64,000 nucleotides of DNA, taken from contig NW_026934212.1 in the NCBI RefSeq assembly GCF_032062105.1, positions 496,001 to 560,000 on the forward strand. The letters run 5' to 3'. The notes below the pieces were generated by a model that saw only the letters and a program-made list of their open reading frames with translations, was not told the DNA's origin and made no database searches. This document shows positions 27,318-54,983 of this stretch, piece by piece (the stretch's first letter is position 1; each line of letters begins with the position of its first letter). Source of the stretch: Saccostrea cucullata (Eukaryota). The position numbers were made by a program, and so were the translations under genes.

Positions 27318-30300
27318 ATGGCTCAGTATAAAATTCCTGACCCTGAGGAGATGATTCCCTGCCCCTACGACAAGGTTCACATGATTAGGGCCAAAAGGAT
27401 GCAGTACCATCTGATGAAGTGCAGAAAGGTCAGTGTACTGTCACTCAAGCTTTTGACTGTTATGATAATTCTATAAATTTTATCTTAAAATTGGAATTTT
27501 GAAATTACACTTCTTGGGTTATGCTCTGAATTTTAATAATTTATAGGCATTGCTAGAGATACACTTAAATACAGATTCCATAAATACCTTAGATTCATTC
27601 AACTATTCATATCTATAATTATAAGAATAGGCATTTCCATTAACACTTTATTCAGATGAAAAGCTAAAATTACAAATAGATACCATCTAAAATACTAAAA
27701 TTGAATTTTGTGTTACTATAATAATAAAATTTCAAAATACAGCTTTTGAGAAGGATTTTCAACTCTTGGTTATTTTGTCCCTTCAGAACTATGTTGGAAG
27801 CGACTTTGCCACTTGTCCTTTCAATGCCAGGCATGAGATGCCCAAACCAGAGCTTCGTTATCACTTAGCTAACTGTCCTGACAAGGCTGTCATTGAGCCG
27901 ATGCTGGCCTATGGTAAGTCATTATAATCAAAAAGTCCATAAGCATTGGCGTCGGAATCAAATTAAAAGTGGGGGGGCTAAGTGTAAAAAAAAATTTTTT
28001 TTGTACCTCCAAAAAAACCTGACAAGCAAAAAAAAAAAAAGGAAATGTCTATTTCCCAAACACGAAAATCCTATTTCGTGGGGGGGGGGGGGGGGGGGGT
28101 AAGGTTCAAACTCCAGTACCAAAAATTTCCTACCTATACTAAGACGTATCTGTGGAAAGTGGGGGGGGGGGGGCTAAACTTACGAAGATATGTTCAATGT
28201 CTATACTAAGTACATATTTGAAAAAAAAGTGGGGGGGCTAAGCCCCCCGTAGCCCCCCCGGTTCCGACGCCTATGATAAGTGTGCAAATTTTTATTACTG
28301 TAAATAAGTTTCTGTTGAAATCATTCATTTTATAATCAATTTTGTTCCATTTTGTTAGGAATTTAAAGTGTGACTTGTTTAGTTTTGGGGAAATTTTTGC
28401 TCTGAACAATAATACATTAACCTTTTATGTGAGAATGAAAACTCTGAACAAAAATACATTGACCCTATATACAACAGTGAAAACTAAAAATGTGTTTTCT
28501 ATGAATATAGAGTTCGGTAGCCGTAAAATGTCAGGTTAGGTAAAGTACAACTCTTTTGAAAAAAAAAACCACACTCATAATTTACAATTATATGACCCTA
28601 AATATATATATGTACTTGTTCATATAATGATAAAATTGAAAAATATTTGACTAGAATTTGAAAGTTGAACATCTGTGCTTTGTTTTGACAGAGAGCAGTA
28701 AGAGGAATGGAGAGGCGTCCATGTTTAGAGGCTGTACTGATCTACCTGTCTATGATAATGTTGTAATTAACAGTGAGGAAAACTGGGACGATGGTAAATA
28801 CATATCTAACTTTGACAATTAATTCTATCAGAAATATGTATTGAAAGGGAAAGTCATTCTTAATGGCCATAAATCTCTGCTGCCACTTTTACTTCACCCT
28901 AGCCACAGGGAAGTGAACTACAGCGTCGTGCCATAAGTATTCGCGGAAAAATGGCGGACGTGATTTGAGAGTTATCGCGCTTGCAACATAAAAGTCACCC
29001 AAATACAACAAAAACAAAACAAACGCTTACCTTTAGTACTTTGTTAAATGTCCCTTGGATCGTATACATGCCATGATGCGTTTTGGGATGGATTTATAAA
29101 GGTTTTGAATATATTCTATGGTGAAATTCTGCCAAGTGTGCAAAATAACAGCGAACAGCTGATCAGGGGTGGTAATATCTCCGGCGTGATTTTGGATCTG
29201 TCTTTTAATTCTATGCCAACAATTTTCAATGATATTAATGTCCGGACTCTGGGCAGGCCACACCATACCCCAATATTATTTGCACGCTTATATTCCTCTA
29301 CAACACGGGCTCTATGTACCGGAGCATTGTCGTCTTGAAAAACGTAGTTGTTTGCAGGGAAATGTCGGGCAATAACAGGCCACAGGTGGTTGTCAAGGAT
29401 ATTTATATATTTCTCAGCATTAATATTACCTTGTACCTTGCATAGAGTCCCTGGACCATACCAGCTGATGCATCCCCATATCATTACGGAAACTTTTGGT
29501 TTTGAAATCGCATACATGCACTCCGGACGGTACGATTCCTGGGCGGATCTCCAGACGTACACACGATTATTTTATCCTATAACCACTTGAGATTCATCAC
29601 TAAATATGATAGATTTCCAGTTTTGTTCAACAGTCCATCTTCGTTTGAGTAAACACCATGCTAAACGTTTCTTTCTATTTACTTCTTTGACAACCATTCG
29701 TTTTCTCACTACTCGTCTGTAAATTTTGTTATTATGTAAAATCCGCTTGACTGTCCGTTCACTAATTGGTTCACAATAATTTCCATTATTAAAATCAGTT
29801 GTTATGTCCTTCAAAACACTTCCCCGGTTCTTCCTAACCATACGAAGTAATCTTACTTCACCACGTTTTGACACTTTCCTGGGACGTCCCGAATGAGGAG
29901 CTCTTTCCACACATTTTCGCTGATGAAACGTTTTTAAAATTGATCTACATGTAGATTCGGGAATTTTCATAATTCTTGAGATCTCACTGACTTTTTGTCC
30001 GTTTTCTTTCAAATCTATAATCAGCTGTTTTATCTCTAGTGACAGTTCTTTTGATTTTCTACCCATGTTGTTTACAGTCCGTAATATTCGGCAGTCTAAC
30101 TTTAGCAGACGTCAAACATGACATCACGGTAAACTTTGACCTTACGCGGTTTTGGGGATGATGTCAAAATACAAAAAAGCGATTGCATATTGATTTAGAA
30201 CAATTTGAAAAACGCGAAGCGTGAACGTTTTACGACGGCTGCCATTTTTCCGCGAATACTTTTGGCACGACGCTGTAGGTAGTATTATTGTGGATCCATT

Positions 30301-33300
30301 GAGCAGAAATGACAAAATTATTGTTAATTTTTTTTTTCTTTTTTTTTTTGTAATTTTATAACAAGTGTTTTTTCCACCCCTCCACCCATTATTATGTATC
30401 CATTAGATTTACTAGTATTGCTACAAAAGCTATTAGAGGTCCAAAGAGGCATGTTAAAAAACAAACAATGGTGTCCATTTTGATAATTTTCAAATTCTGA
30501 AAGACCTCATGATAATATTTTGTCAGTGCTATCACCATTTGTAATGTTAAGAAGACTTGCTTTGGAATAAATGTGTCAGCTTTGTGAAATAAAATAAAAA
30601 CATAAAAATATACACTTGTTTTAATTTCTACGTACAAGATTTCTCAATCTTCTTGTTTGTTGTTTTACAGAGATTCCTTCTGTGGCCAGGATCGGGGTGG
30701 ATCCACAATTTTTTGCACGTCAGGACCACATGATTATCCCAGGGTACTGTATATTTAACTTGAATGAGAATTTTTGTTTTAATTTCTACATTGTAAAGTT
30801 AATTAAGGTTTAAGACATATTATATTGATGATTTTTTACTATTTCAGTCTGACAAAATCAGAGAAGAGAGAGTTTGCCAAGCAGATGCACATTCCAGCAG
30901 AGGACAGGAAGTATGTGTTTCCTTATGATTTTCCTCTCTGCTAAAAAAGAAGGGGGTACAGTTGACATTGTTTGTCTGTCTACCTGTTTTCGTGATTATA
31001 TCAAGTTCATAACTTTTCAAGAGGGCAAAAATGGAAACATATCAATCAAAAATAGTTTCAAACCTTGAAAATTTTCATATTAACCTAAATTATTTGTTCA
31101 AGTTCAAGGTTATAGTGAAAAAGTGTACAATTTATTTACTATGTCTTCACAAGAAATTTTGAAACTGGAACTATTAAGATTGCTCCTGATCTGCCCCATG
31201 GTTTGCTATGTAAATGAAGAAAAGTAATACCTGTTCCTGCCATATTTTGATCATGGAGAAATACCTGGTCATTTTCTTAAGAACTTTGTAACAAAAACGC
31301 ATCAAAAGTGCATACTTCATACATGCACAATGTATTTATTGCCAGAAAACATGAACTGACCAAAGGTTATTAACTTAAATTCAAGTTGCAGAAAGAATAC
31401 TTAAAATCTGAATTGTAACCAACAATCTAGTTCTGTTCTCTGATTAAAATTTAATTTCACTTTTATAAGGTCGTTTTCTTGAAATAAGTAAATCTGTTTC
31501 TCAAAATTTGCCAAGCATTTCAATGTAAAACCTCTGTGATACCTTATTTTCCGTGTTCAATAACAGATACTTGGCCCACTACAAGGAGGCAGAGGAGCCC
31601 ATTAAGGATGAACAGCCCAAACTCCGCCTCCCAAAGACTGCAGCTCAGACTTATCTCCCTCACCAAAAGAAGCTCGATCAGCATCCATCGGCAGTGTTTG
31701 CATATTCATTATCCATGGCCGGTGTGGGGCGAGGGCTTCCAGGTATCAATGCTACAGAATGGATCAGTTATTAAAACAAGAACATCTTAAGATTGTAAAT
31801 TGCTAAGGCCTACAATATATTTTAAAGTCAAAACTTGACATTTGATATTGTTATATTGACAGCCAGCAGTCAGAATGGAGTAATGAATGGCTCTCAGAAT
31901 GCCCCACCTGGTATGAGTAGAGGGAGGGGGCGTGGGTCCAGCCCCGCGGTGGGGAGGGGAATCAGCGTGACTGAGATGAACGGTGACGTACCTCGCTCTC
32001 TAGGACGGGGAATGACCTACGGTGAGGTTCCCTCCTCGTCCCAGCAGGAAACCCCAGCAGTGAGACCAGCAGAGCCCCAGACTAACAGCCCGGTGTTTAG
32101 CGTGGGGATCGGCAGGGGATACAAAGTGCCTAATGGTTTGTATGCATTATTGATATTCTAACCCACAGGTTATGAATGTTTTTATAGGGTATAATTGAGG
32201 CCTATTCTCAAAAGGAGGCATTGATAAAAATATTTTTTAAAAATCTTATGTTAGTGTCTTTCACAGTATTTGCTATGTAATTCAAGATTACACTGTATTT
32301 TATCAAAACAAATACATACATAGAGAAGAAAAGAAGTTTGTCTTTGAAATCTCTTACTTCATGATGATGCTTTTCAATTGATGAGGAAGATTTTGATTAA
32401 GTTTCAATGTTCTAATTTAAAACCAACATTTACATAGAATTGTTTTTCCAGGAACAATTTCACCTCCATCCTTTGTGGTTCCTACAGTGCCCCAGCAGAA
32501 GAATAATGGTAAGAAATAACTCTCAGTATTATTATATTTTCATGTTACTCTGTAACTAAATGTAACTGGTTCACATGCATTTAACAATGCATTATGTTAC
32601 CCTTAGTATTAGCAATACACTTGGCAATATGGTTGCAATAAGTAGCACAACAACCTCATCACAAGTTTGTAATTTGCAAATGTAAGGGTTGTAGATTTCT
32701 CGTAACATCAGTTATGGTAAATGAATCAAAGATTGCATCCAATTTAAGAGTTGATTGTAAACAGCAAATGAAAGACAAAAATAATTTGATGTGCAAAAAT
32801 AGTCAAATTTAAGATGATAAAGAAGTGATAGAAAATTTTAAAAGCTTTATTTTGAGTAAAAATGAATGAGGAGTTTGAAATGGGATAAAAGTGTTAACAC
32901 TTATTTGTTGGATAGGAAAGGAAAAGGAATCAGACTTGGAATCAGAAGGCTCGCAGGTGATTGAAGATGTGGACAAGAAGCTCAAAAAGATTGAGAAGAA
33001 GTTGAGACAGATAGAGCTTCTGGAGGACAAGGTGGGGGAAGGATACACCTTGACTAAGGAGGAGGTAGGGGTTTGATATGTTGGCTATGGTTAAGTATAT
33101 CCCCTTTTAAGGAGTGTAGTTGATTTTATATCCATGACGTTATTAAATAGATGAACTACTGCTTTGCAATCTGTGTAAGTTTGTTTTACTATGATGCTAA
33201 ATAATGAATGTGAAACATATCTTGGGTTACATTTCAAGATGTACTGTATATCTGAACATGTATAATAATGTACATGTGTACATACATGAATATATTTTTA

Positions 33301-33429
33301 AACAAATGAATCAATGTTGCTTGTTCATCTTGACTTTTAAATATTTTGCAGACTGCAAAGGTGAACATGAAGGAGAGCCTTACAGCAGAGAGGGAGAATC
33401 TACAGGAGAATGCCAGGTTAAACAAGTAA
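27318..33429 (+). CDS. GTSF1: GTSF1/Asterix-like protein, paralog A (about 402 aa): 2 CHHC zinc fingers, acidic Trp motif, GRG-rich region, C-terminal coiled coil
   Basis: Phase-consistent GT-AG exons 27318-27428, 27787-27913, 28692-28793, 30671-30743, 30848-30910, 31567-31742, 31863-32135, 32452-32508, 32916-33064, 33352-33429; CPYDKVH...YHLMKC and CPFNARH...YHLANC; EENWDDE. Confidence 0.9.
27944..28275. mobile_element. hAT-like MITE with 5-bp TSD in an intron of paralog A
   Basis: TIR CATTGGCGTCGGAA / TTCCGACGCCTATG; ATAAG on both sides. Confidence 0.75.
28921..30275 (-). mobile_element. Full-length Tc1-family transposon (1355 bp) in an intron of paralog A, antisense
   Basis: 35-bp TIRs CAGCGTCGTGCCA(T/A)AAGTATTCGCGGAAAAATGGC with 1 mismatch; TA TSD on both sides. 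Confidence 0.95.
29033..30066 (-). pseudogene. Tc1 DD34E transposase with one nonsense codon (29572-29574) and one 1-bp frameshift (about 29270)
   Basis: HTH N-terminus, [39 protein letters not shown]; D-to-E spacing of 34 after repair. Confidence 0.9.
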
Positions 33430-34670
33430 ATGGATAAATGACTAGCAAGGAGGAGAGGATTGTACTGTACATATAGTAGTTACTCAGGATTGTTCTGTAT
33501 ATATAGCTCTTGGATGTGTTGCAGGAACTTTACATCTTTTATTTTATACCCTTTTATATGACTTGTTTTAAGGGGAGTTTTATTTCTATACCCAATGCTC
33601 AGATATAAATTGTACTGATAATACCAAAGTTTTGTAATTCTTTGTACTTTGTACATTGATGTTTGAGGTTTGTCTGAAGATGTTTAAATAATCTTTAATG
33701 TAGGAACTGATTGGGTTTTCTGTTGTCATTCTTCATTTGTTTATTTTTTTAAGCCTATCTAGTATTGTCATTCTTGTGCTTTGTCCATTTAGCACCATAT
33801 GGTACACAAAATTCTTTTTTGTATAGAAATGCATTGTGACTTTTGCCTACTATGATTTTTCAGGGCATTATGATAGGCATGCTAAGTTAAAAAAAAATTT
33901 CTTGTTGAGTGGCCCAGAGAATTTTTAGGGCACAAATAAAAGTAATATCTACACTTGATACATTTCAAAGAACCAAGATGTTTTGAAGATTGAAGATACA
34001 AAATGAGATCTGACAGTGTACTTTCATGTAACTCATAAAGCAATGTCATCAAAATGTATAGACAATTCAGCTGTTTTACCATTACATATGCTGGTGATGA
34101 TAATAAAATTGTTTTGGAAGTTAACATTTTACACTTAACCAAGATGGTTTTATATACTACCATGTATTTTACAGTACTGATGTATTTTAAAGTGCAAGTA
34201 TTGTTTAACATAAAGGAATGAAGATATTGCTTGTTTCTTTTTCTGCTCATTAAATTGTAACATATAATTTGACAGGGACATGAAAATGTTTCAAGAACAT
34301 GTTGATCATGAAGATCATACATGATAATTTTTGCAGTATGCTTTTTCCTCGTGGTAAAAAAAAATGAAAACATTTTTCCTATAGTAAAGGGGGGGGGTTA
34401 CTACTACATGTATCCTATGAAAGAGTATGATGTAAATAACGCAATATACAATTACATAACATAGATAAACGTGTGTAGTACACATTGAAATTTGAAAAGG
34501 TAAACAAAAATCAAGGTCATTTAGTTCTTTAAAGAAAAGTCTTGAAATCACTGAATATGCAGCAGTAATTTAAACAATGAATTTGCCATTTTAGATCAAT
34601 CGAAATATTCCAACTGTTCATCATGTACTGGATATTGGCAGGCAGCATCAGTGTTAATTCATTCATGCAG

Positions 34671-34940
34671 TCCATTCCCAAGTAACTTGAAGCCCTACCT
34701 AAATCGGAACTTGAATGGATGATGCATCTAGAGATGAACACAACCAGACTTGCTTTGGATGCTGGATCTGATCTACATTTACAAGATTAATGAAGTTAAA
34801 CTTTTGTGAGCAGGTCCTGTCCATTCCCAAATAGCTTGAAGCCCTACCTGGACCAAATTTGCATTGATGAATGATGCATCTAGAGATGAACACTACCAAT
34901 TGCTTTGGATGCTGGATCTGACCTACATTTTCCAGATTAA
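34671..34940. repeat. Two diverged direct copies of a ~120-bp unit (period about 148)
   Basis: TCCATTCCCAA...GAAGCCCTACCT...GATGCATCTAGAGATGAACAC...GCTTTGGATGCTGGATCTGA occurs twice. Confidence 0.7.
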
Positions 34941-35259
34941 TTTCGGTTGATTCCCCAGCTCCCCAGTGTCAATGAAACTAGCCAATATTATATAGTTTCC
35001 CATGATATTCATAATTTGGGTCAAGATCTCAAAAATGAATAACCCCCCTTTCAGAATTTTTTTTTTAACACACGTTTTCTACAAAAAAGCCAAGTTATTT
35101 ATTTTCTTTTTTATCACAGCTGTATCAAAAAGAAAATCCCAAAAGAAGAAAAAATAAATGAACCCATGTTCATGGAAAAAAAATTTAGATCCGTCCATGT
35201 GATAATGCATAAAAATTACGAAACAGTGGCTGGCGTTTGCATTCTATATTTAGAGGTCG

Positions 35260-35860
35260 CGTCATCAAGCACGTGACCTGGTGTATACATTGTTGGCGCT
35301 TAGCTTTGCAGTATCTTATTACAGACGATGTCCGTCAATATTTTTTGACTAATTTCAAGAGTTATTCAATTCTAAACAGGTTGGTAAGATTTCCCTATTA
35401 TGCTTATTAATACAGACTGTTCTCTGGTTTGTATGATGGAAAAAAAAAAAAAAACTTTCGATAACGAGCATCATAACTACGTACTTTGGGGAATCTACTT
35501 TTGTTTTGCCGCTTTGTTTATAGTCTCGTTCAACCAGACCCTCGGCTCTCTCCGTAAATCTCCGACCAGCCTGAGTTTGGTGTTCCAAATTAAAGATTAG
35601 TTTGTTAATGTAAAGTCACAATCCAGAAGAAGAAACATATATACCATTTGTTTTAAAAAAAGGATCGTCAAAATGAAAACAAGATAGCGCCCTCTGACGG
35701 TTACAAACGAAAACGTGTTTTTATACTTCCAAGTGCCTAAGAATTTCGCTATGCGAAAGTCTTACTTCCGGTTTATCCAAACTGAATAAAAAGACAAGTT
35801 CTGATTGGTCAATAACAAAATAAAATTTTACAGCTGGATAGATGTGAAGGTAAAAAATTT
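35260..35860 (+). promoter_or_regulatory. Candidate promoter region of GTSF1 paralog B
   Basis: CpG-containing patch with E-box CACGTG (about 35269), CTCF-like site (35685-35700), ETS ACTTCCGG, reverse CCAAT, candidate donors at about 35380 and 35849. Confidence 0.35.
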
Positions 35861-37484: not shown

Positions 37485-40400
37485 ATGGCGCAGTACAAAG
37501 TGCCAGATCCAGACAAAGATGAAGTCTGCCCTTATGACAAATCACACGTGTTTCCAGCCAAAAGGATGCAGTACCATCTCATGAAGTGCAGAAAGGTCAG
37601 AAAATGTATAATGTACCATGCTCGAGAAAATACAATTTATATCAACATCATGAAAATTAGACATAAATTTTTACTATTTCTACATATGGACAAACGTATA
37701 TTTCAGTATTTCAAAGTCATTATTTCTCCACAACCATGCTGCCAATTTTACCACAAAGTGCAATTGACCTGCTGTACTGATTTTTTACATTTTCTCTTGT
37801 AGAACCATAAGGGAAGTAGCTTTGCCACCTGCCCTTTCAATGCTAGACATGAAATGCCTAAACCGGAGCTGCGCTTTCATCTAGAAATTTGTCCAGACAA
37901 GGCAGTGATTGAACCATTGCTGGCTTATGGTAAATCAATGATGTCCTGTTTTATTTTTATAAATGTATGTTGGATTAAAAACAAAACAACAACATAACAA
38001 CAACAAATCCCACTGATGTTGTAAAGACAAGGTTTATGCAGATCACAGCATCTCTTAAAACTGTTAAAAATGGGAAAAGGACTTACAAATTATAATGGGT
38101 TCACAAAAGGCAGAAATATAGTTCCTAAATCTTTGATATTAAGAGTTGTAGGATAGCAAACTTTTAAGAGACACGATCTTGAGACCAGATGGTAATATGG
38201 TCACAATTACCTACTTTCTGTAATTTTTAAAAAAAACAGTTAAATTAGCCTTTTTAGATGCTAAGAATCATTAAACTTTGTCATTTAGTACATGATTATA
38301 CTTTAGAGCAATAAAATTAGCATGTTCAGAAGTAGGCAATTAACTGTTATGCATTTCATCAGAAGAACAATTCTAGATCCCTAAACCTATAGGTTTTCAA
38401 ATTGAATTCTGGCATTACTGTTTAGTTTGAAAACAAACTAATTTCAAAATGTTAAAACTTATTTGCTAATGAAAAGGTTGAACATTGTGCATTGTTTTTA
38501 CAGAGAACAGTAAGAGAAATGGAGAAGAGGGGTCCATGTTTAGAGGCTGTACCGATCTACCTGTGTATGACGACGTCACAATTAACAGTGAGGAAAACTG
38601 GGATGATGGTAAATCTACACAAGTACCACTTGCAATAATATCTGTAAAAAAGTACTTTAAAAAGAGAGAAATCTTCAGTACTTAAAAATTATATCTCTAT
38701 AATTCTTATAGCTGTCAGTCCAGTAAGATTTGAGTTGAAGTTATATACAAGAACATTCAATTTTAAAAACAAAATGGCATGTAATTTTTAAAATCATGAC
38801 TCGTATGTTTGAGTCATAACAGTTGCAATAGTTGTCCAAAGTTGTATATAGGATTTAGTGTAAGAAGCCAAGGCCTATTTATACACTGATGCATTTTTAT
38901 TTGGATTAAAAAAAAAATTGTTTGGTATATGAAGGTATCGATAATTTGAATTTTCAATAATTAGAAAATTCATATATTGAGATATTGGAGTGCAGTTGTT
39001 AGACTATTTATTTTTTTGTTGTTTAACAGAGATTCCTTCTGTGGCCAGGATTGGGGTGGATCCACAATTTTTTGCGCGTCAGGACCACATGATTATTCCA
39101 GGGTAGTGTATTCTTAAATTGAAAATATACATTTGTTATATGAATATAGTGGTATGTTTGTTCATTGCTGATTTTGAATATTTCAGACTGACTAAATCAG
39201 AGAAGAAAAAGTTTGCAAAACAAATGTATGTTCCTGCAGAAGATAGAAGGTATGTGGTATTAATTGTTGTTGGTTCCTTTATAAGAAACATTATCAATGC
39301 TTTGTCTGAGAATATGGAGTAAATGAAAACAAAAGGCCAGTATAAACATGATTATGAATTTACTTTATAACAGATACTGGACACATAACACGGAAACAGG
39401 ACCGCCATTAAAGGATCATGAGCAGTCCAATCTGCGTCTCCCTAAAACAGCGGCCCAGACTTACGTATCGAATCAGGAGAAGTCGCTTCAGCAGCCATTA
39501 GCAGTGTTTGCATATTCGCTATCTATGACGGGTATAGGAAGAGGAATACCAGGTAACTGTATCTAAGGAAGTATTAAAATAGTTCACAGATAAATTAAAA
39601 TAAATTGTTTTGCAAAATTTTTCATGCTGAAAGAGTTATAAATTTAATGCTAGTTTCATCAAGTTTCTTGTAATTTGCCATTTCTGTACAGATAATGGTA
39701 TGAGAAGAGAAGTGGATAAAAGACTAGGTCGCGGCAGAGGGAGGGGCCGTGGCTCCACCCCTGCGGTGGGGAGGGGGACCACTATTGCTGAAACAAATGG
39801 AAGGATGTCCCAGTCCCATGAAAATGGGTTAACTTTTGACAAGGGTGGTCAATTTTCCGCTGTCCAGACAGGAACCCCAGCAGCTGTTAGATCTGAGGGC
39901 CTGAAAAGCACCCCTGAGTTTAGTGTGGGGATTGGGCGAGGATACAGAGGATCTGATGGTAAGCGTGCAATTTATTTTAGATTTCAAAAAAAGAGTTTTG
40001 TCTTTCCTGAATTATTTTCAAAAACTCAAGGAAGAGGAACTGGAAAATAATGCATTCTGAACTTTTGATTATTTCAGGAACAACGTCATCCCCATTCTCC
40101 TCTGTATTAGATGCAATGCCTCAACAAAACAAGAATGGTAAGAAACTATTATTTAATGATATTCAACACATTATTCTGATGATTGTGGATTGTTCAAAGA
40201 TAGAAGAGGTACATGCCATGAAAAAGTTAATTAAAGCAGTCTGTTTTATAAAACTACAGCACAAGAAGACTTGGACAGTTTGAAGGATTTGGACAAAAAG
40301 CTGAAGAGAATTGAGAAGAAGCTGAGACAGATTGAGCTGCTAGAAGAGAAGATGGAGGAGGGGTATACTCTGACAAAAGAGGAGGTAGGAGCAGGTTGAC

Positions 40401-41168
40401 TTGATTGTACAGTCAAACCTTATTATCGTGAACTTAGTGGGGCAAAGAAAATAACTGAGATATATGTCCAAAGATTTGAGATACCGTATAAGTGGAAATA
40501 GTAGTGAGACGCAAATTTAGCGATTTCTCCATAAAAATTAGTATTTTATTCTTAGCGATAAGTAATTTTAGCAATTATAAAATGCTCACTAAAGAAGCTA
40601 TTACAGAATTTAATAAAATGCAATTAAAATTTAGCGATATTCAATAGTAGCAATCTTAACACCCTCGCTAATGATGCCAAAATTATTTCTCGCTAAGAAT
40701 TCTACTTATACAGTATCTAGGGTAAAATACTGAAAGAATAAGTATTAATTTGGACTTCCATATTATTTCAACAAATCCTTGGCGTTCATGATATTGGTGT
40801 TTAACTGTGCACAGCCCCTTAGTGAAACCATATCTGTATCATGTGTAATGAGAAACAAACTTGTGATTTAGTTTACTGAAAATTGTACGCAAGATAGTGC
40901 AACATACAGTATTCATGCATCTACTATGTACAGTATTTTGTTCATATACCTGACAGTTACATTTTAGTTAAGTACACATTAACTGTACAGTATTCAGATC
41001 ACAAACACACACATTTGGTACTGTATGTACACATATACTCTGTATAAATATTCATTTCTCTGATAAAAATTTTCTGATTTTTTATAGGCTGCAAAAGTTG
41101 GCATGAAGACAACTCTGAGAAATGAGAGAGAAGAGCTGCAACGGAAGAACGTGTCAAGAAAAATTTAA
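37485..41168 (+). CDS. GTSF1: GTSF1/Asterix-like protein, paralog B (about 396 aa), same exon structure as A
   Basis: Exons 37485-37595, 37803-37929, 38504-38608, 39030-39102, 39187-39249, 39374-39552, 39692-39958, 40078-40137, 40260-40384, 41088-41168; all phases match A; CPYDKSH...HLMKC and CPFNARH...HLEIC. Confidence 0.9.
40481..40715. mobile_element. Small MITE in the last intron of B, nested in an older CAGTCAAAC-type MITE (about 40408-40809)
   Basis: TACCGTATAAGTGGAAT / ATTCTACTTATACAGTA inverted ends. Confidence 0.5.
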
Positions 41169-41214
41169 TAACTCTGTGCAAGACTGAAAATGACTCCAAT
41201 CTATTATCAGATAA

Positions 41215-41219
<5 letters not shown>

Positions 41220-41251
<32 letters not shown>

Positions 41252-41327
41252 ATTCTGATCACATTTTGTCCGTCGTCCGTCCGTCTGTCCGTCCGTCTGT
41301 CTGTCTGTCCGTCTGTAAACTTTTCAC

Positions 41328-41364
<37 letters not shown>

Positions 41365-43367
41365 TGACCAAACTTGGTACAAAGCATCCTTGGGTGAAGG
41401 GGAATTTAAATTGTTAAAATGAAGGGACATATCCCCTCGCAAGGGGAGATAATCAAGAAAAGACAAAAATAGGGTTGGGTCATTAAAAAATCTTCTTCTC
41501 AAGAACCACTGGGCCAGTAAAGCTGAAACTTATGTGAAAGCATCCTGGGGTAGTGTAGATTCTAAATTGTTCAAATCATGACCCCTGGGGGAAGGGCGGG
41601 GCCACAATGGGGAATCAAAGTTTTATATAGAAATATATAGGAAAAATCTTTGAAAATCTTCTTCTCAAGAACCACTGGGTCAGAAAAGCTGAAACTTATG
41701 TGGAAGCACCCTGGGGTAGTGTAGATACTAAATTGTTCAAATCATGACCCCCGGGGGAAGGGCGGGGCCACAATGGGGTATCAAAGTTTTACATAGAAAT
41801 ATATAGGAAAAATCTTTGAAAATCTTCTTCTCAAGAACCACTGGGCCAGAAAAGCTGAAACTTATGTGGAAGCATCCTGGTATATTGTAGATTCTAAATT
41901 GTTCAAATCATGACCCCCGGGGGAAGGGCGGGGCCACAATGGGGAATCAAAGTTTTATATAGAAATATATAGGAAAAAATCTTTGAAAATCTTCTTCTCA
42001 AGAACCACTGGGCCAGAAAAGCTGAAACTTATGTGGAAGCATCTTGGTATAATGTAGATTCTAAATTGTTCACATCATGACCCCCGGGGGAAGGGCGGGG
42101 CCACAATGGGGAATCAAAGTTTTACATAGAAATATATATTGGAAAAATCTTTGAAAATCTTCTTCTCAAGAACCACTGGGCCAGAAAAGCTGAAACTTAT
42201 GTGGAAGCACCCTGGGGTAGTGTAAATTCTAAATTGTACAAATCATGACCCCCGGGGCAGGGCGGGGCCACAATGGGGAATCAAAGTTTTACATAGAAAT
42301 ATATATTGGAAAAATCGTTGAAAATCTTCTTCTCAAGAACCACTGGGCCAGAAAAGCCGAAACTTATGTGGAAGCATCCTGGTATAATGTAGATTCTAAA
42401 TTGTTCAAATCATGACCCCCGGGAGAAGGGCGGGGCCACAATGGGGAATCAAAGTTTTACATAGAAATATATATTGGAAAAATCATTGAAAATCTTCTTC
42501 TCAAGAACCACTGGGCCAGAAAAGCTATAACTTATGTGGAAGCATCCTGGTATAATGTAGATTCTAAATTGTTAAAATAATGACACCTGGGGGAAGGGTG
42601 GGGCTACAATGGGGAATCAAAGTTTTTTATAGAAATATATAGGAAAAATCTTTGAAAATCTTCTTCTCAAGAACCACTGGGCCAGAAAAGCTGAAACTTA
42701 TGTGGAAGCACGCCTGGGGTAGTGTAGATTCTAAATTGTTCAAATCATGACCCCCGGGGGAAGGGCGGGGCCACAATGGGGTATCAAAGTTTTACATAGA
42801 AATATATAGGAAAAATCTTTGAAAATCTTCTTCTCAAGAACCACTGGGCCAGAAAAGCTGAAACTTATGTGGAAGCATCCTGGTATAATGTAGATTCTAA
42901 ATTGTTCAAATAATGACCCCCGGGCAAAGGGCGGGGCCACAATTTGGAATCAAAGTTTTATATAGAAATATATAGGAAAAAATCTTTGAAAATCTTCTTC
43001 TCAAGAACTACTGGGCCAGAAAAAGTGAAGCTTATATATATAGAAGCATTCTAGGGTAGTGTAAATTCTAAATTATAGGAATCATGACCCCAGGGGGAAG
43101 GCCGGTGCCATTATAGGGAATCAAAGTTTTACATAGAAATATATAGGAAAAATCTTTGAAAATCTTCTTCTCAGGAACCACTGGGCCAAAAAAGCTGAAA
43201 CATATGTGCCCATGGAAGGATCATGGGTTAGTGTAGATTTCAAAATGTCTAAATTATGATCAGTGGGGTAGGGTGGGGATGCATTATGTATAACAAGGGG
43301 GAAATTTGGTAAAGAACAGAATGGTCAAAGCTTCTCAGGTGAGCAATGTGGCCCATGGGCCTCTTGT
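41220..43367 (+). mobile_element. Helentron/HINE-type element with about 11 tandem ~167-bp satellite monomers, about 50 bp after the stop of paralog B
   Basis: AGCTCACCTGAG...CTCAGGTGAGC IR, (CGTC/TGTC)n, monomer anchor AAAATCTTCTTCTCAAGAACCACTGGG, 3' GGCCCATGGGCC-TCTTGT. Confidence 0.88.
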
Positions 43368-44398
43368 TTTTGTTATGTAAAAAGTGTTCAAAGTTGAAAA
43401 CATTTTGTATGTGTAAATATTCAATTGATATCATTATGTAGTACATGTACTTTATGTTTTATAACATGCCAAGAAGCTTTTGCAGTTGTAATAAAACAAT
43501 TACTTGTATAAAAGTTGTAAATTTAGAATTTTATTCTTTTGCATAACAATTTCACAGTGTTCATGCATTTATTAAATTCTTCCTTTATAAATGAAGCTCT
43601 GCAAGATTTTACCATAGACTTAAATTGAAGGATTGAAAGATGTGGCGTATTTTTTATAAGTCCGGACTAACTAAAATTAAAATGATCTTTTTATTTGTTT
43701 TGTTTCTTTATATTAAGATAGGACTTTCATGTAAATTACACAATTTAAATCATTCGCTTTTCATAGATATCACAGAATTGAAACAAAAACTGATTTATTT
43801 CCTGCTCAGAATTAAATATCAAACACAGTTTAAGGTCAAAAGTTGGGGTATTTAAGTTCAAAATCTGTGAAATTTTGAATTTGAACGTAAATAAGAAATA
43901 TCATGTAACTCTACACTTGATCTCGTATTTTTATTTTTTAGCTCAGCTTTAATTAATTTTGCAGAAAATTATATGTATCAGTTACATGAATAACAATTGA
44001 ATAGTATACTACCTATCAGTGCCAGATCCCTTGAAACTCTTAATTAGCACTGTAGTCCCTTAGATAAGTTTTATGAATTGTTTTACGGATATTTTACATA
44101 CAATAAAATCAATATCTAATGACAACAAAAAATGATTCATTCATTTTATTAAATGTTTGGGAACAAAAGGAGGGAGATCCCCCTACCCACACACCCCCAC
44201 CCCCACCCATGCTCTTTATATCTACCAGTGCCATTGACTGTTGTATGAAAATTGTAATAATTTCTTTTTAAATTTTGCTTAGGACAAGCAATTTAAAAAT
44301 TTTCATTGTTCATTTATAAAATATTTTCAATGTGCATGTAAAAGGTGTACCAGTTACTGTATGAATATTATTACGAACGAACTGTCCAAAATATAGTT

Positions 44399-44498
44399 TG
44401 ACGTCATGAAATATATATAGCGGGAAAAGAAGAAGCTGAGAAAGTTGTCCAGTGTCACTTTAGGACGATGTAAATTTTGTTAGTCAGTTAAGGTAATA
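44399..44498 (+). promoter_or_regulatory. Candidate promoter and non-coding exon 1 of paralog C
   Basis: Full CRE TGACGTCA 44399-44406, TATA-like ATATATATAG just downstream, donor AAG|GTAATA at 44492/44493. Confidence 0.5.
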
Positions 44499-47400: not shown

Positions 47401-47986
47401 CAGGGGCTGACAAATAGATTTTTCAAGCACTTGCCCACGGGCAAGTGCATGGTCAAATTTCACTTGCCCTACTTCAATTTTTACTTGCCCCACCAGCACC
47501 TTATATTCATCAAAATGAATTAATTTGTCTCTAAATCAAAAAAAATTTCAGCCAAGGATTGTTATTTTGAATATTAGCGACATTTAAAACCACCTGCCAT
47601 TAAGTACTGCGTACCATACAATCTGTTGATTGACTGAATGCTGTTTTACGTACCGTTCAAGAATAATACTTTCTTTCATATAGAGACGCGCTATAGTTTT
47701 CCACGAAATTAAAATTATTTTGTTATAAGAGTTATCTTCCTTCCTGTCACACTTCGTATGCAAACCACTATACTGGTTTGCATACGAAGTGTGACAGGAA
47801 GGAAGATAACTCTTATAACAAAATAATTTTAATTTCGTGGAAAACTATGACATTTTTAAAAATATTTATTGATTGGTTATTTTTTTGAGCCACTTGCCCA
47901 CGGGCAAGTGCCTATTAAAAATTCACTTGCCCGCCTCTAAAATTCACTAGCCCCGGGCGTCGGGCAATGGGATTTGTCAGAGCCTG
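47401..47986. mobile_element. hAT-like MITE with 6-bp TSD
   Basis: TIR CAGGGGCTGACAAAT / ATTTGTCAGAGCCTG; TGCTGA on both flanks; subterminal CACTTGCCC repeats. Confidence 0.75.
47693..47848. repeat. Perfect inverted repeat with 75-bp arms and a 6-nt loop
   Basis: Arms 47693-47767 and 47774-47848 are exact reverse complements. Confidence 0.92.
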
Positions 47987-50388
47987 TGCTGAGTATAAAT
48001 CTAAAGAAAGTTCCTCCGATGGCAGCGTGTATACGTATATTATATTCTTTGGATTTCAGGGGATGAGGCCCATGCATCCTACACCATTTAAACATATATT
48101 GTCTTGATCTCTTTGATACAGCTGAATATCAATTAAACTGATTATTTAAATACATGTACATGTAGGTAACTGTGTATCAAATGTTTATATTATACAGTTA
48201 GAATGTCATCCGGTACCATTGACTTATATAACGATTTTAGTATACTCTGAAAGTATGAATTTTCACGTCTGACTTTTATTGTAGTCTGACAAATTGTTCT
48301 GCATCAAGCCTATATATCTACATAACTTAGATATTTTTATCGGTATATTTTAGTGCTGAACAAATTCAATTCCTCAATATTTTAAGCATGAGAATAAAAT
48401 ACAAGATTTTCTCTTTACAAAATTGTACAACATACGATATTAGTCTTTAACAAATTTTTAAGAATTGCAAGCGAAGTAACGTGTCTTTGTTCCATGGCAA
48501 GTACAACTTGCAGGGCTAATTTTTGAAGAAGGCCTACCCCCACCCCGTTTCCCCATATAGTTAAGTCAAAATTATTGATACAATGTGTACCGCTATATTT
48601 TATTTGATTTTAGCATATCAAATCACTGTAATATATGCAAGTAACATCGTTAGGGGGGGTGCTAAAACAAACCCGTTTAATCTAATTAGATTTGGGGAAT
48701 TTTCAACATTACAATATAATTTTCAATTGGAATGAAATAAAAGGACATCGATTTTCAAAGTGTGATATAATTGATAAGTAAAAAAATAACAATGCCTGAA
48801 AGCTGCACCACACCAACACACCCCTAAAAAACATTGTTCAGGGAAGTACAACTATATCATTTCCAAAAAACACATGTACATGTAAGTACTGGGTAAGGGT
48901 TTGTTTTTGTGGAGGTAAGTTTGCTGACATTCCCGAAAGGGGAAAACAATACTTTGACCGGGATTTATCCTTACGACCTTACTACATGAATATAAATTTT
49001 AGTCCCTTGCAAGCAATCGTAAATACTCGGTCATTTCTGTGCATATAAAATATTTCTCCCTTGGAAAATATCCGTGTTGTTACGAATGCCTTGCGAGATA
49101 ACTTCTGATTAGGAACTTTTTTGGTTCTGTACAAATGGTCAGCGGCCTCTATCCCCTTATGGAGAGGGCTTATTTAAGCTATGCCTGCTGCCCAATCCAT
49201 TTATGTAATTGTTACATAATAAAATATGTTCAAATCAAATCCCCTTGTGAAGGACCCTTTCAAATACTAATTTTTCAGAGATTAAAGCATGCTTATATTC
49301 ATGTTGTAAAAAAGATGAAATGATGTTGTTGAATATATTCTTTAAAAATGTACGACTTACTTTATTATTTCAATATTGACCAACATATACATATACAAAA
49401 AATGCTTTTTTCCCAACAGCTAACGCTATTTTACAATGTATACGATCATATAGATGCTAAAATTTGGGGGGAGACGTTGAAAAACTTAAATACATGTAGA
49501 AAAAATAATTCATACCTGATACAAAAGGGTTATTTAGTAACAATAACGTTCCAAATATCAATAACGTTATGTGACGTTATTCAACGTTTTATAGCGTTAT
49601 CTTTTTAAAATTGCATTGCTTTCATTTTGAGTTTTAATAAGAATTTAGAAGGTATACAATAAAAAATTTGGTATCAAAATATTCAGAAAAACTAGCTCTT
49701 ACAGAATCGGTGAAAAAACGATTTTCTAAAATTTTGTCACGAAGGTCACTTTTCGCTTGACGCAACTCATTTTATACTTATTTGTGAAAATGGAAATCGG
49801 AGAAAAAGTGGGTGCAACGCTTTCAGTGTTTTGGTGGATGGGATGCCAATATTTACAGCTGTATAGGCTAATTGTATGTAGTATTGTGTATGTCCTATCA
49901 TATATCATGCAAAAATAATCTCCAGAGTTAAAATTTTTGAAAATTTGGTCAAAAATCAAGGTAAAGGGGTAAATAGCATGCTCAGAATTATTTTGTTAAA
50001 GGCAATGCACATGATAAATATGAAACAGTTACTTCGAGTAGGTCATGGGGTCATATCTCTTCTCAGTCAAAAGTTATGACCAAGGTTTAAGTTTTTGTGA
50101 CAGACTGACAAACAAACAAGATGTAATATCCCCATGCTTTTGCGAAAACAAGGGGCAATAATAGGAAACTGAAGGAAAACATTTCAGTTTTCCAAAGGAA
50201 GTAAAAAGACCTTAGTTTGGTACATATAATAGAGTGTAAAAAAATTTTTTAAAGTTGATCCTCCTTTTAAGAAAAGCAAAATCTTATAAACAAAAGCCGG
50301 ATTCAGGTGAGCTTTGTGGCCTGTAGACCTCAATATAAAATTTTTTACAGATTCCCTTGTTATTTCTTTAATTTACAGACTATCCTAA

Positions 50389-50513
50389 ATGGCGCAGTAC
50401 AGAGTGTATGATCCTGAGCAGGAGATTCCCTGTCCGTACAACAAATGTGAGATGATACGGGCCAAGCGAATGCCGTACCACCTCATCAGATGCAGGAGGG
50501 TCAGTCAGTTTTA

Positions 50514-50557
<44 letters not shown>

Positions 50558-50624
50558 ATTTTGTCCGGCGTCCGTCTGTCTGTCTGTCTGTCTGTAAACT
50601 TTTCATATTTTCGACTTCTTCTTA

Positions 50625-50655
<31 letters not shown>

Positions 50656-50664
50656 CCACAAAGT

Positions 50665-50699
<35 letters not shown>

Positions 50700-51286
50700 A
50701 AGGAAAGATGAAATCAGGAAAGATGAAACTTATGGAGAAACATCCTCAGGTAGTGTAGATTCAAATTTGTTAAAATCATGACCCCCGGGGGTAGGGCGGG
50801 GCCAAAATGGCCGACCAAAGTTTTACATAGAAATATATAGGAAAATTCTTTAAAAAATCTTCTCAAGAATGACAAAGCCATAATTCATCATATATATATA
50901 TTCAAGCATGCTCAGGTAGTGTAGATTCAAATTTGTTCAAATCATGACCCCTGGGGGTAGGGCGGGGCCAAAATGGCCAACCAAAGTTTTACATAGAAAT
51001 ATAGGAAAATTCTTTAAAAATCTTCTTCTCAAGAATGACAAAGCCATAATTCATCATATTTATATGGAAGCATGCTCAAGTAGTGTAAATTCAAGTTTGT
51101 TCAAATCATGACCCCCGGGGGTAAGGCGGGGCCAAAATGGCCGACCAAAGTTTTCAAAGATATATATAGGAAAATTCTTTAAAAATCATTTTCTAAAAAT
51201 AGCAAATCCATGATTGGTCATGGGACTACTTTTGGATTTAAACTTTACAATGAAAAAACATTTTCTACTTTTTCCTACCCTTAGTG

Positions 51287-51320
<34 letters not shown>

Positions 51321-51468
51321 CATAATTAATGGGGGGGGGGGGGGGTAAAATTAAGTATCAGATACCTTTGTTAAATTGCATCTGAGGTGCATGCTCTCAG
51401 TGTAGCTTTCAGGGCAAAACTTAAACATGACAGATATGGTTCACTTGGTCAAAACTTTCATGAAGTTA

Positions 51469-51511
<43 letters not shown>

Positions 51512-51591
51512 CATTTTGTCCGGCGTCCGTCTGTCCGTCCATCTGTCTGTCCGTCTGTCTGTAAACTTTTCACATTTTCGACTTCTTCTCA

Positions 51592-51622
<31 letters not shown>

Positions 51623-54600
51623 CAACAAAGTATCCTTGGGTGAAGGGGATTTGAGTTTGTTCAAATGAAGGGCCACGCCCTCATCCAAGGGGAGATAATT
51701 GGGAATTAATGAAAATTTGGTGGCATGTTTTAAAAATCTTCTTCTCAAGAACCACTGTGCCAGGAAAGATGAAACTTATGGGGAAACATCTTCAGGTAGT
51801 GTAGATTTAAGTTTGTTCAAATCATGACCCCCGGGGGTAGGGCAGGGCCAAAATGGCCGACCAAAGTTTTACATAGAAATATATAGGAAAATTCTTTAAA
51901 AATCTTCTTCTCAAGAATAGCAAAGCCAGAATTGATCATATTTATTTGGAAGCATCCTCAGGTAGTGTAGATTCAAGTTTGTTCAAATCATGACCCCCAG
52001 GGGTAGGGCGGAGCCAAAATGGCTGACCAAAGTTTTACATAGAAATATATAGGAAAATTCTTTAAAAATCTTCTTCTCAAGAATAGCAAAGCCATAATTC
52101 ATCATATTTATATGGAAGCATCCTCAGGTAGTGAAGATTCAAGTTTGTTCAAATCATGACCCCCAGGGGTAAGGCGGGTTCAAAATGGCCGACCAAAGTT
52201 TTACATAGAAATATTTAGGAAACTTCTTTAAACATCTTCTTCTCAAGAATAGCAAAGCCATAATTCATCATATTTATATGGAAGAATTCTCAGGTAGTGT
52301 AGATTCAAGTTTGTTCAAATCATGGCCCCCAGGGGTATGGCGGGGCCAAAATGGCCGACCAAAGTTTTACATAGAAATGTATAGGAAAATTCTTTAAAAA
52401 TCTTCTTCTCAAGAATAGCAAAGCCATGATTGGTCTTGGGACTACTTTTGGATTTAAGCTTTTCAAGTTTAAACCAATTTTCCTTTTTCCTAGCCACAGT
52501 GCTCAGGTGAGCTATGTGGCCCATGGGCCTCTTGTATATTTCTATGACATACCTCTTTTCAGAAAGTTTAATTAAGGTATATAATTAAGTTGTAATTTTG
52601 CTTGTAGAATCATCCCTGTTCAGAGTATGCTAGTTGTCCCTTGAATGCCACCCATGTGGTGCCAAAACCTGAGCTACGGTACCACCTTGAAAACTGCCCA
52701 GATAAACCACGACTGGAACAGGATATCTCCTTTGGTGAGTATGAAAATTACTGAATAGATTTTTAACTCTTTTGGCAGTATTCTTTAAATTCTTAATAAA
52801 AAAAACCTTCTGTTGGTTGAAATGCCATTTTAGAAATGAATTAAGATATGGGTTTTGAATTTTTCCAGGAATTTTCTTAAATACTGTAAATGTTTATTAT
52901 TTTGATGACTTTTGAAGTTAGCATAGATTTGATTTGGAGCATTTCTAAATTTTCTTATTTATGTGAAAATGTGCAAGACATTTAATTGTATTTGATTTTT
53001 GTGCGATCCACCAAAGCTGCTAAATAGAATACACAGCCAAATGTAATATGCTTACAGTATATATATGTCTTTTTGCACAGCATAAAACTTATTAAATGAT
53101 GGGGGTTTAAGGACACCAAAAAAGAAATTCTACCATGCATGGTTTGAACAGAAATTGTGATTCTTTGGAATTATGACCTCATAGAAACAAGTACATTTAC
53201 AATATATATACATGTACTTGCATCATTTCACAGCATTGATTTATTTACCATTACAAATCTGACAGAATAAATAACTAAGTCATGGAAAAATGGAAATATA
53301 TATTCTCCCTGTTTTATTGCTCTTCATTCTAAAATTGTCTGATTTTTAAATCAGAAGCACAGAAGAGGGAAGGAGGCACCCTGTTCACTGGTTGTACAAA
53401 GTTACCCACATACAGCCAGATAGACTTAAAGATTGAAGATGACTGGGATAAAGGTGGATTACTCATACAGTAGAATTTAATGTTACTGTATTCATCAAAA
53501 AAATTCTGAAAAGAAATGAATAATGGATAAGTACGGGTAAATGTAGATGTAAATGTTTTATTTTAAATACTCTGTTTTAATTTAATTTTACTAACATTGT
53601 ACATGTACTACTTTTTTTCTTGCTTCCAGAAATTCCTCTTCTTCCTCGTATTGGGGTGGATCCAAATATTTTTGCCAAAATGGAAGGAATTCAACTACAA
53701 GGGTAAGTGTTGTGTATACACCATTATGAAATTTAAATTTGCCTGATTTCATTGTAAAAATTTTTAGCAGAGATTATTTTTTTTTCTCAAATTTCTAAAC
53801 TAGGCTTACAACAGCAGAGAAGAAACACATGAAGGCACAGTATGCTCTGCCACAAGAGGAAAGAAGGTACGTATACATATATGTGCAAAGTAAAATTAAA
53901 GTGGATATTGTAGCAATTTTTTAAACCATCTCAATACTGTATTCTGGGAATTTTTTGCTCAATCTTATTTTCGCGGCTTCCGTCCTAAACATATAGATTG
54001 GCAAATTTAAAACTGGGCAAATTCAACAAACGCAGAATAATTTTTAAAAAAGAAATGTGACGTGGCGAATTTAAAACGGGTAATGTTGTTTGAAAGTACA
54101 TAAGGTCATAAATATCACTGGACAAAAATAACCCGTATACGGTACTTATAAAGATAAAGTTGTTTTCTGATTGTCACCAGTAATGGTTGTTATTTTAGGT
54201 ACTTTAAGAATCCAGATAAACCAGAGGAGAAGCCAGTAGCAGGTGCCCCAAAACAGGAGGAGGAGGAGGAAGAAGAACTGAGGATTCCTAACAAAGCCCC
54301 CCAGACCTACGTCCCTAAACCCCAGTCAACCAAACAGCAGCCCCACACTGTGTTCGCCTTCTCCTTATCCTCTACAGGAGTTGGCAGGGGTCAGACAGCA
54401 TCAACGGGGGAACAGCCCTCCATGGAGGGGCAGGGGGTGGGGATGGGAAGAGGAATGGCAGGTGTGGGTCGGGGGATCACAGGGGTGGGCAGAGGAAGGG
54501 CGGAGTCAGTCTGGCTTGGCAGTGAAAAGGTGGACAATTCTTTGAACTTGATTGGGAGAGGACAGAGTATTAGAGGGGGTCATGTGATGAGGGGTAGTGC

Positions 54601-54983
54601 AGGAGGGGGTCAGGTGATGACAGGTAGTGTGGGAAGGTTGATGATGGCAGGGACTGGACGAGGTATTTCCGTGGACAAGCTAGATAAACAAGGTACATTG
54701 GATTATGTTTGTTAAGCTGAGCTTTGTCTTCATTTACATTATGGTACTGCAGTGCCGAATTTGCCCTTCTATTCAGGAAAAAAATAATAAAACTGGAACA
54801 ATATATAAATGTTGAAGATCATACAGTAAATGAAAATGATTAATATTTAAAAATAATCTAAATTTTATTTGTGGGGATTCCATGTATAAGGGGAGAATTG
54901 AATTGAAAACAGTAAGGAGCTTGCTTAAAGCAACTAGTGTGGGAATTAATTATTAGTATGTTTTATTTACCATTTCAGATTGA
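50389..54983 (+). CDS. GTSF1: GTSF1/Asterix-like protein, paralog C (about 323 aa): altered first zinc finger, GRG-repeat tail, no coiled coil
   Basis: Exons 50389-50499, 52608-52734, 53355-53453, 53630-53702, 53804-53866, 54199-54692, 54979-54983 (last exon less certain; the unspliced frame stops at 54715); CPYNKCE...HLIRC and CPLNATH...HLENC; EDDWDKE. Confidence 0.85.
50515..51320 (+). mobile_element. Helentron/HINE-type satellite-carrying element in an intron of C
   Basis: Same termini and ~166-bp monomers as 41220-43367. Confidence 0.85.
51470..52535 (+). mobile_element. Second Helentron/HINE-type element in the same intron of C
   Basis: Same termini, microsatellite and monomers. Confidence 0.85.
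53935..54144. mobile_element. Small MITE in an intron of C
   Basis: TACTGTATTCTGGG / ACCCGTATACGGTA inverted ends. Confidence 0.45.

Follow-up and report, generated by a model that had tools for sequence, protein, structure and literature searches.

A conserved tandem array of three long GTSF1-family genes, candidate PIWI cofactors, in the oyster Saccostrea cucullata

We analysed a stretch of 64,000 nucleotides (nt) from the oyster Saccostrea cucullata (RefSeq assembly GCF_032062105.1, contig NW_026934212.1, positions 496,001 to 560,000; called the window in the following, with position 1 being its first letter), which carries between positions 27,318 and 54,983 a tandem array of three long GTSF1-family genes. 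GTSF1, also known as Asterix, is a cofactor for efficient cleavage by PIWI proteins, and its CHHC fingers bind RNA in mouse. The reading we favour, and hold to be reasonably probable, is that of a conserved array of three functional genes whose products act as PIWI cofactors with divided roles. Directly observed are how the genes are built, their place in the GTSF1 family, their conservation, the purifying selection acting on each of them and, for copies 1 and 2, transcription; PIWI binding, a role of the long tail and a division of labour are inferred. The region is a variant of the known GTSF1 family and not a new kind of system.

Gene models started from stop-to-stop fragments of three sub-regions on the plus strand, which were paired block by block into exons. 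The window was searched exon by exon, and full-length searches used the stored database proteins, which are identical to the models. The joining of exons was confined to scripts, i.e., translation, local BLAST, trees and the ratio of nonsynonymous to synonymous substitution rates (dN/dS). The resulting coding sequences (CDS; lengths in amino acids, aa) are:

27318-33429, plus strand: CDS of copy 1 (A-type long GTSF1, LOC134240157), 402 aa in 10 coding exons; GT-AG model, RefSeq identity and a transcript contig
27318-27428, 27787-27913, 28692-28793, 30671-30743, 30848-30910, 31567-31742, 31863-32135, 32452-32508, 32916-33064, 33352-33429, plus strand: exons of copy 1
37485-41168, plus strand: CDS of copy 2 (A-type long GTSF1, LOC134240159), 396 aa in 10 coding exons; model, RefSeq identity and spliced contigs
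37485-37595, 37803-37929, 38504-38608, 39030-39102, 39187-39249, 39374-39552, 39692-39958, 40078-40137, 40260-40384, 41088-41168, plus strand: exons of copy 2
50389-54983, plus strand: CDS of copy 3 (B-type, 'protein D7-like'), 323 aa in 7 coding exons; RefSeq protein mapped exactly onto the window
50389-50499, 52608-52734, 53355-53453, 53630-53702, 53804-53866, 54199-54692, 54979-54983, plus strand: exons of copy 3

The spliced translations of copies 1, 2 and 3 are exactly identical to the RefSeq proteins of LOC134240157, LOC134240159 and 'protein D7-like', respectively, i.e., the three genes are already annotated, though uncharacterised. All introns are of GT-AG type and the models, built from the coordinates, contain no internal stop. 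Thus, three head-to-tail genes of about 402, 396 and 323 aa with open frames, as proposed by a first-pass annotation made from the sequence alone, are confirmed. The same annotation had the first six introns matching in position and phase, which is right for the first five in all copies and wrong for the sixth. Copies 1 and 2 have all nine introns in common (phases 0, 1, 1, 2, 2, 1, 1, 1, 0), while copy 3 shares only the first five with them: the site of their intron 6 lies in an uninterrupted 494-nt exon of copy 3, whose own intron 6 (54693-54978, phase 1) leaves only 5 nt of coding sequence behind it. The exon structure of copy 3 is identical in its S. echinata orthologue.

Membership of all three genes in the GTSF1 family is supported by sequence comparison with known structures. 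Searching the chains of the PDB with phmmer returned mouse GTSF1 (6x46, E-value 8.2e-24) as well as the 149-aa chain of Bombyx GTSF1 from the cryo-electron microscopy complex of Siwi, PIWI-interacting RNA (piRNA), target, GTSF1 and Maelstrom (9nhb/9nhc, E-value 8.1e-19, residues 7-151). The Bombyx alignment runs through the acidic Trp motif and the GLTxSE block. In addition, each finger exon was searched singly with the Pfam model PF05253 (zf-U11-48K), and all six score above its cut-off of 21.1 bits:

27318-27913, plus strand: tandem CHHC fingers of copy 1 (exons 1 and 2), Pfam 44.7 and 40.6 bits
37485-37929, plus strand: tandem CHHC fingers of copy 2, Pfam 43.0 and 39.1 bits
50389-52734, plus strand: fingers of copy 3, finger 1 variant and finger 2 canonical, Pfam 23.6 and 39.9 bits

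Double CHHC fingers had been predicted for each copy, which agrees with the Pfam result but passes over a changed zinc ligand in finger 1 of copy 3. There, the second ligand is Glu in place of His and a Cys occupies the preceding position, both of which recur in all five ostreid copy-3 orthologues; the finger scores 23.6 bits compared to 43-45 bits for the other first fingers. Finger 1 of copy 1 is identical in sequence to that of a Pinctada protein. In mouse GTSF1, the RNA-binding residues of finger 1 are R26, R29, K36 and K39. All four basic positions are kept in copy 1 and in copy 3 (with Arg for Lys at two of them), and three of the four in copy 2, which has Pro at the position of mouse Arg26, a change also seen in the S. 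echinata orthologue of copy 2. The A-type copies of 305-312 aa from Crassostrea/Magallana carry Gln at this position.

Behind the fingers, each copy carries the acidic Trp motif that had been read from the sequence, i.e., EENWDD in copies 1 and 2 and EDDWDK in copy 3. The further blocks named in the first-pass annotation (RIGVDP, LTxxEK, LR(L/I)P..QTY and VFA(Y/F)SLS..G(V/I)GRG) are all present, but LTxxEK is no addition to the family: since the alignment with the 149-aa Bombyx GTSF1 spans the GLTxSE block, it belongs to ordinary GTSF1. The exons concerned are:

28692-28793 (copy 1), 38504-38608 (copy 2), 53355-53453 (copy 3), plus strand: acidic Trp motif, aligning with ENWDDE of Bombyx GTSF1
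30671-30743 (copy 1), 39030-39102 (copy 2), 53630-53702 (copy 3), plus strand: exon 4 with the RIGVDP block
31567-31742 (copy 1), 39374-39552 (copy 2), 54199-54391 (copy 3), plus strand: exon 6 block with LRLP..QTY and VFAYSLS..GVGRG, from the alignment

Across 41 long relatives, the zinc ligands, one invariant Trp (Trp111), LRLP and two GRG sites are conserved, and a nearly invariant Tyr is found 11 residues upstream of Trp111. In the proteins of Lingula, Owenia and amphioxus, two Trp are found at a spacing of nine residues. Within the genome of 1.17 Gb, the exon 6 block occurs in three places, all of them in this array.

The remainder of the proteins forms a long tail, for which no Pfam match was obtained in exons 6 and 7, in the tail of copy 3 or anywhere beyond about residue 155. 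In the AlphaFold model, the fingers and a C-terminal helical hairpin are predicted with confidence; between them, the Trp, RIGVDP and LTxxEK blocks form short helices and residues 160-337 are disordered. Each protein holds 5-6 GRG motifs, with two GRG sites being more than 90% conserved across phyla.

31863-32135 (copy 1), 39692-39958 (copy 2), 54392-54692 (copy 3, fused to exon 6), plus strand: disordered exon with GRG repeats, predicted local distance difference test (pLDDT) about 40
32916-33429 (copy 1), 40260-41168 (copy 2), absent from copy 3, plus strand: eIF2A-like C-terminal helical hairpin, exons 9 and 10

For copy 1, the predicted helices of the hairpin cover residues 339-368, 375-382 and 384-401 (pLDDT 82-95). 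A profile of the hairpin from 17 sequences of 17 species matches the last roughly 50 residues of eIF2A (8dys_A 550-600, E-value 1.7e-8). Copy 3 and its orthologues have neither the hairpin nor the FVVP motif, and their tail is richer in GRG. In M. gigas (OY970749.1, 10.485-10.522 Mb), two adjoining shortened A-type genes of 307 and 312 aa are without most of the GRG exon, and one of them bears the RefSeq name 'eukaryotic translation initiation factor 2A', which is explained by the eIF2A match of the hairpin.

The length of the three proteins had been contrasted with the about 170 aa of vertebrate and fly proteins; it is no peculiarity of this locus, as the long form is the common one in lophotrochozoans, amphioxus and echinoderms. 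A profile of exon 6 finds 16 clusters among 1.8 billion representative proteins, and a full-length search returned 67 relatives of about 250-560 aa. Their hosts are bivalves, gastropods, a chiton, a cephalopod, the brachiopod Lingula, the annelid Owenia, nemerteans, amphioxus, a crinoid, a brittle star and a sea urchin. Homologues of 320-560 aa are found in the molluscs, the brachiopod, the annelid, the nemerteans, amphioxus and the echinoderms. Given 67 long relatives over many phyla, the long GTSF1 form is widespread and probably ancestral to bilaterians. To our knowledge, all mechanistic work on GTSF1 concerns short proteins of 150-170 aa (mouse, flies, moths, sponge, worms). Our literature searches for GTSF1 with mollusc or oyster gave no relevant study, and no description of the long form was found.

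The array is conserved within oysters. The trees place every copy next to its orthologue from S. echinata (support 100/99, 100/100 and 100/100), with copies 1 and 2 belonging to an ostreid clade A and copy 3 to a long-stemmed ostreid clade B. Since Ostrea, Magallana/Crassostrea and Saccostrea are found in both clades, the A/B duplication is older than the ostreid radiation. The synonymous divergence (dS) between copies 1 and 2 is 1.3-2.1 compared to 0.4-0.75 between the two Saccostrea species. A duplication of copies 1 and 2 within Saccostrea only is not rejected by the approximately unbiased (AU) test (p 0.43); from these comparisons, the copy 1/2 split is dated only as older than the split of S. 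cucullata and S. echinata. A quick tree had grouped copy 2 with the Crassostrea genes of 305-312 aa, a grouping that dissolved into a polytomy in the careful tree. The proposed synteny with a tubulin gene as anchor is borne out, i.e., array and downstream tubulin gene are kept in S. echinata (three genes, then tubulin) and M. gigas (307 aa, 312 aa, 294 aa, then tubulin). In the window, this neighbour is represented by:

60458-60835, plus strand: exon of the downstream tubulin gene, Pfam Tubulin, E-value 8e-6, below the cut-off of the model

Exon 4 differs from the rest of copies 1 and 2. Its DNA identity between them is 96% compared to 60-86% for the other exons, with 3 of 73 bases differing in S. 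cucullata and 5 in S. echinata, while orthologues differ at 8-9. That is, the paralogues are closer than the orthologues, which points to local gene conversion over a short tract, or else to constraint acting on the nucleotide sequence.

To assess selection, dN/dS was computed between S. cucullata and S. echinata orthologues with two methods, for which the S. echinata proteins were mapped exactly onto their own loci:

Copy 1: dN/dS 0.06 / 0.09 (two methods), fingers at most 0.05, tail 0.10
Copy 2: dN/dS 0.23 / 0.28 (two methods), fingers at most 0.05, tail 0.45
Copy 3: dN/dS 0.16 / 0.24 (two methods), fingers at most 0.05, tail 0.38

None of the values is near 1, i.e., all three copies are under purifying selection, in agreement with the intact genes first described. 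Copy 1 is the slowest to evolve, with 2.5-4 times faster evolution in copies 2 and 3.

Transcript data reproduce every intron of copies 1 and 2 of the proposed exon chains, while for copy 3 such evidence comes only from its transcribed M. gigas orthologue. A contig of 2,086 nt from run SRR26159587 holds an uninterrupted frame of 402 aa that is 99% identical to copy 1 and reproduces all nine junctions. For copy 2, each of the nine introns is seen as a GT..AG joint in spliced contigs of four runs, which belong to four studies. In M. gigas, contigs of seven runs carry the B-type orthologue of copy 3 with the reading frame uninterrupted. A look-up of sequencing runs gave none of RNA from S. cucullata, only small runs with 5-6% of the sequence words. 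Look-ups of the exact proteins of copies 2 and 3 gave no matching transcript contigs.

The SRR26159587 contig also extends copy 1 at both ends, with a 3' untranslated region (UTR) to at least 34226 and a 46-nt 5' exon that is found twice upstream in the window. The start at 27318 given by the first-pass annotation is hence that of the CDS and not of the gene, which begins further upstream:

22759-22804 or the identical 19489-19534, plus strand: non-coding 46-nt 5' exon of copy 1, splicing to 27284, from blastn of the transcript contig against the window

The junction has a GTAAGT donor and a polypyrimidine-AG acceptor. Both 5'UTR exons, each with a GTAAGT donor, lie in a segmental duplication of 1.7 kb (18828-20500 and 22110-23768, 97.9% identical), with 22-bp tandem arrays on its flanks (17391-17943, 18755-19276 and 22110-22546). 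Satellite arrays of about 165 bp are found upstream of copy 1 (25055-25648, 21807-22109), downstream of copy 2 (41487-43208) and in the 2.1 kb intron 1 of copy 3 (50737-51215, 51782-52431). Intron 3 of copy 1 holds a Tc1/mariner transposase remnant on the minus strand (29033-30066, in several frames, with HTH_Tnp_Tc3_2 and Sleeping Beauty HTH domains).

We compared the oyster proteins with known members of the family. With GTSF1/Asterix of mouse, Drosophila and Bombyx (BmGtsf1), they share two N-terminal CHHC fingers, the basic residues of finger 1 and the acidic Trp motif, and with BmGtsf1 also the GLTxSE block. They are, however, two to three times longer (323-402 compared to about 150-170 aa), and their tail adds LRLP..QTY, VFAYSLS..GVGRG and GRG repeats, to which the A-type adds FVVP and the eIF2A-like hairpin. 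As a long-tailed variant, they also exceed the size of about 20-30 kDa given for the family in PMC13650160. Several paralogues per genome, partly linked, are likewise known from mouse (GTSF1L/GTSF2), Drosophila (Tpp and others) and Bombyx (Gtsf1-like). In such sets, diverging central and C-terminal parts set the PIWI preference (bioRxiv 10.1101/2021.05.04.442675; PMC9539491; PMC12184484), i.e., mouse and moth GTSF1 paralogues distinguish PIWI proteins with the central and C-terminal parts being decisive (bioRxiv 10.1101/2021.05.04.442675). The oyster copies differ from each other by a whole module and a zinc ligand rather than by tail sequence alone, and in contrast to the mouse, fly and moth sets, the oyster genome has a second, intronless short family. 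Nematode GTSF-1, which is a cofactor of RRF-3, an RNA-dependent RNA polymerase (RdRP) of C. elegans, shares the tandem CHHC fingers and a host genome with RdRP genes but is, for the nematode set of PMC13650160, reported to be without the PIWI-binding aromatics, whereas the oyster proteins keep the invariant Trp.

The hairpin resembles the C-terminal module of eIF2A and PYM in its length of about 50 residues, a [10 protein letters not shown]...G..L...E..K pattern and its helical hairpin fold; here, a GTSF1 core takes the place of the beta-propeller or Mago-binding peptide to which it is otherwise attached. A possible likeness to Caprin HR1 comes from Foldseek, which matches Caprin-2 HR1 with a root-mean-square deviation of 1.0 over 56 columns at an E-value of only 1.2. 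The RefSeq name of copy 3, in turn, goes back to Xenopus D7, a maternal factor of oocyte maturation from the same CHHC family, and carries no functional evidence.

By analogy with these relatives, the two N-terminal CHHC fingers would make the RNA contact, as in mouse GTSF1, and the central acidic Trp motif would sit in the region by which GTSF1 binds PIWI proteins. In the most likely mechanism, each protein would dock on a target-engaged Piwil1 or Piwil2 complex and, once docked, promote slicing or silencing, as has been shown for the proteins of mouse, fly, moth and sponge. Differences between the copies would on this view concern contact with RNA, the choice of PIWI or the partners that the tail recruits. 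The B-type copy 3 has lost the C-terminal hairpin and has a changed first finger, while the A-type copies 1 and 2 keep the hairpin. Judged from sequence, specialisation of the copies is plausible, since copy-specific changes in finger 1 and tail that are conserved across species are what it predicts.

Several observations weigh against PIWI cofactors with divided roles. In mouse GTSF1, three aromatic residues (W98, W107, W112) bind PIWI. With a single central Trp in the oyster copies compared to these three, the mode of docking on PIWI is uncertain. Regarding expression, the spliced contigs of copy 2 share about 97% identity with the window and thus derive from another individual or a close relative, and transcription of copy 3 in S. 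cucullata has the RefSeq model as its sole basis. Furthermore, only two PIWI genes, Piwil1 and Piwil2, both ubiquitously expressed, are reported for oysters (PMC6128900), which are few for three long and several short GTSF1-like genes. The latter comprise at least five intronless open reading frames (ORFs) of 127-161 aa elsewhere in the genome and further copies with stop codons. Finally, nematode GTSF-1 works with RdRP instead of PIWI (PMC13650160), and at least eight loci of the RdRP family PF05183 (C2808, C5217, C11363, C23494, C12518 and others), several in open frames of 738-1435 aa, indicate that this oyster keeps RdRP genes.

The short GTSF1-like loci lie on contigs C11786, C21757, C17586, C9490, C18820, C8649, C10273 and others (L005-L012, with L011 being an 80-aa fragment). 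Their frames encode two CHHC-like fingers followed by KKG(D/N)TSLPxY...ENWD(D/E)E, with relatives only among Logan-derived proteins, and appear to be tail-less retrocopies of the long genes.

The same data were weighed against other explanations. If the copies were redundant duplicates kept for dosage or robustness, serving the same PIWI complexes in the same cells, their differences would be neutral drift in a disordered tail. Most of the divergence is indeed found there (tail dN/dS 0.10, 0.45 and 0.38), exon 4 is homogenised between copies 1 and 2, and mouse knock-outs of Gtsf1l and Gtsf2 are without phenotype (PMC9539491). On the other hand, the duplicates are old given the dS values above, the A/B split precedes the ostreid radiation, and functional sites have changed (a zinc ligand, an RNA-binding Arg, a whole C-terminal module) in a way that is conserved in every orthologue examined, such that we regard redundancy as unlikely. 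A still smaller chance is given to one or more copies working outside PIWI slicing, be it as cofactors of the oyster RdRPs or, via the eIF2A/PYM-like tail and the GRG motifs, as regulators of ribosomes or messenger ribonucleoproteins (mRNPs). The RdRP loci, several of them in long open frames, fit such a role, an RdRP link for lophotrochozoans has been raised (PMC13650160), the hairpin matches eIF2A, and copy 3 takes its RefSeq name from Xenopus D7. Binding of the 40S subunit, the 48S complex or mRNA by an eIF2A-like module is known only for human PYM and eIF2A (PMC4072592, PMC6208778); in human PYM, the part equivalent to the hairpin associates with the 40S subunit, while no such association was detected for Drosophila PYM (PMC4072592). 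All three copies, however, keep the invariant Trp in the acidic motif, in contrast to the nematode GTSF-1 set reported to be without PIWI-binding aromatics (PMC13650160), and can be aligned with Bombyx GTSF1 over the stretch that the entry of the Siwi complex contains.

A reading of copies 2 and 3 as duplicates in decay or artefacts of annotation, with copy 1 alone being functional, is contradicted by the results and hardly credible. Their faster evolution and the lack of an exact transcript match among the look-ups would be expected from decay, but their frames are intact, canonical splice sites and exon lengths are kept in S. echinata, dN/dS stays well below 1 (at most 0.05 in the fingers), copy 2 has spliced transcripts and the B-type orthologue is transcribed in M. 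gigas.

If the three genes are PIWI cofactors with divided roles, the locus bears on tissue differences in piRNA biology. In oysters, PIWI genes and piRNAs are expressed in soma and germline, and according to Jehn et al. (PMC6128900), factors beyond the PIWI level must set the ping-pong mode of a tissue. The GTSF1 paralogues of this array, being conserved and distinct in structure, are candidates for such factors. More generally, many invertebrate lineages including amphioxus have a conserved GTSF1 that is two to three times longer, with GRG motifs and an eIF2A/PYM module, and paralogues with and without this module constitute a natural experiment on the function of the tail. We see the value of the locus in this contrast and in a conserved, undescribed tail. 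A wider scenario is speculative and receives little credence from us: the ancestral bilaterian GTSF1 would have been long, with GRG (possible methyl-arginine sites for Tudor proteins) and hairpin linking the PIWI slicing cofactor with ribosomes or mRNPs. In vertebrates and insects, only the short core would have been kept, and in oysters the functions would have been divided among A paralogues with the tail and B paralogues without it, and these might set homotypic or heterotypic ping-pong by tissue.

Two further frames were observed in the window apart from the array. At 14103-16175 on the plus strand, an intact frame of 690 aa combines DUF4371 with a hAT dimerisation domain, i.e., a hAT-type transposase or a domesticated derivative. 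On the minus strand, 3900-7181 holds a single-exon ORF of 1,093 aa that is rich in Ser and Lys and gave no Pfam match.

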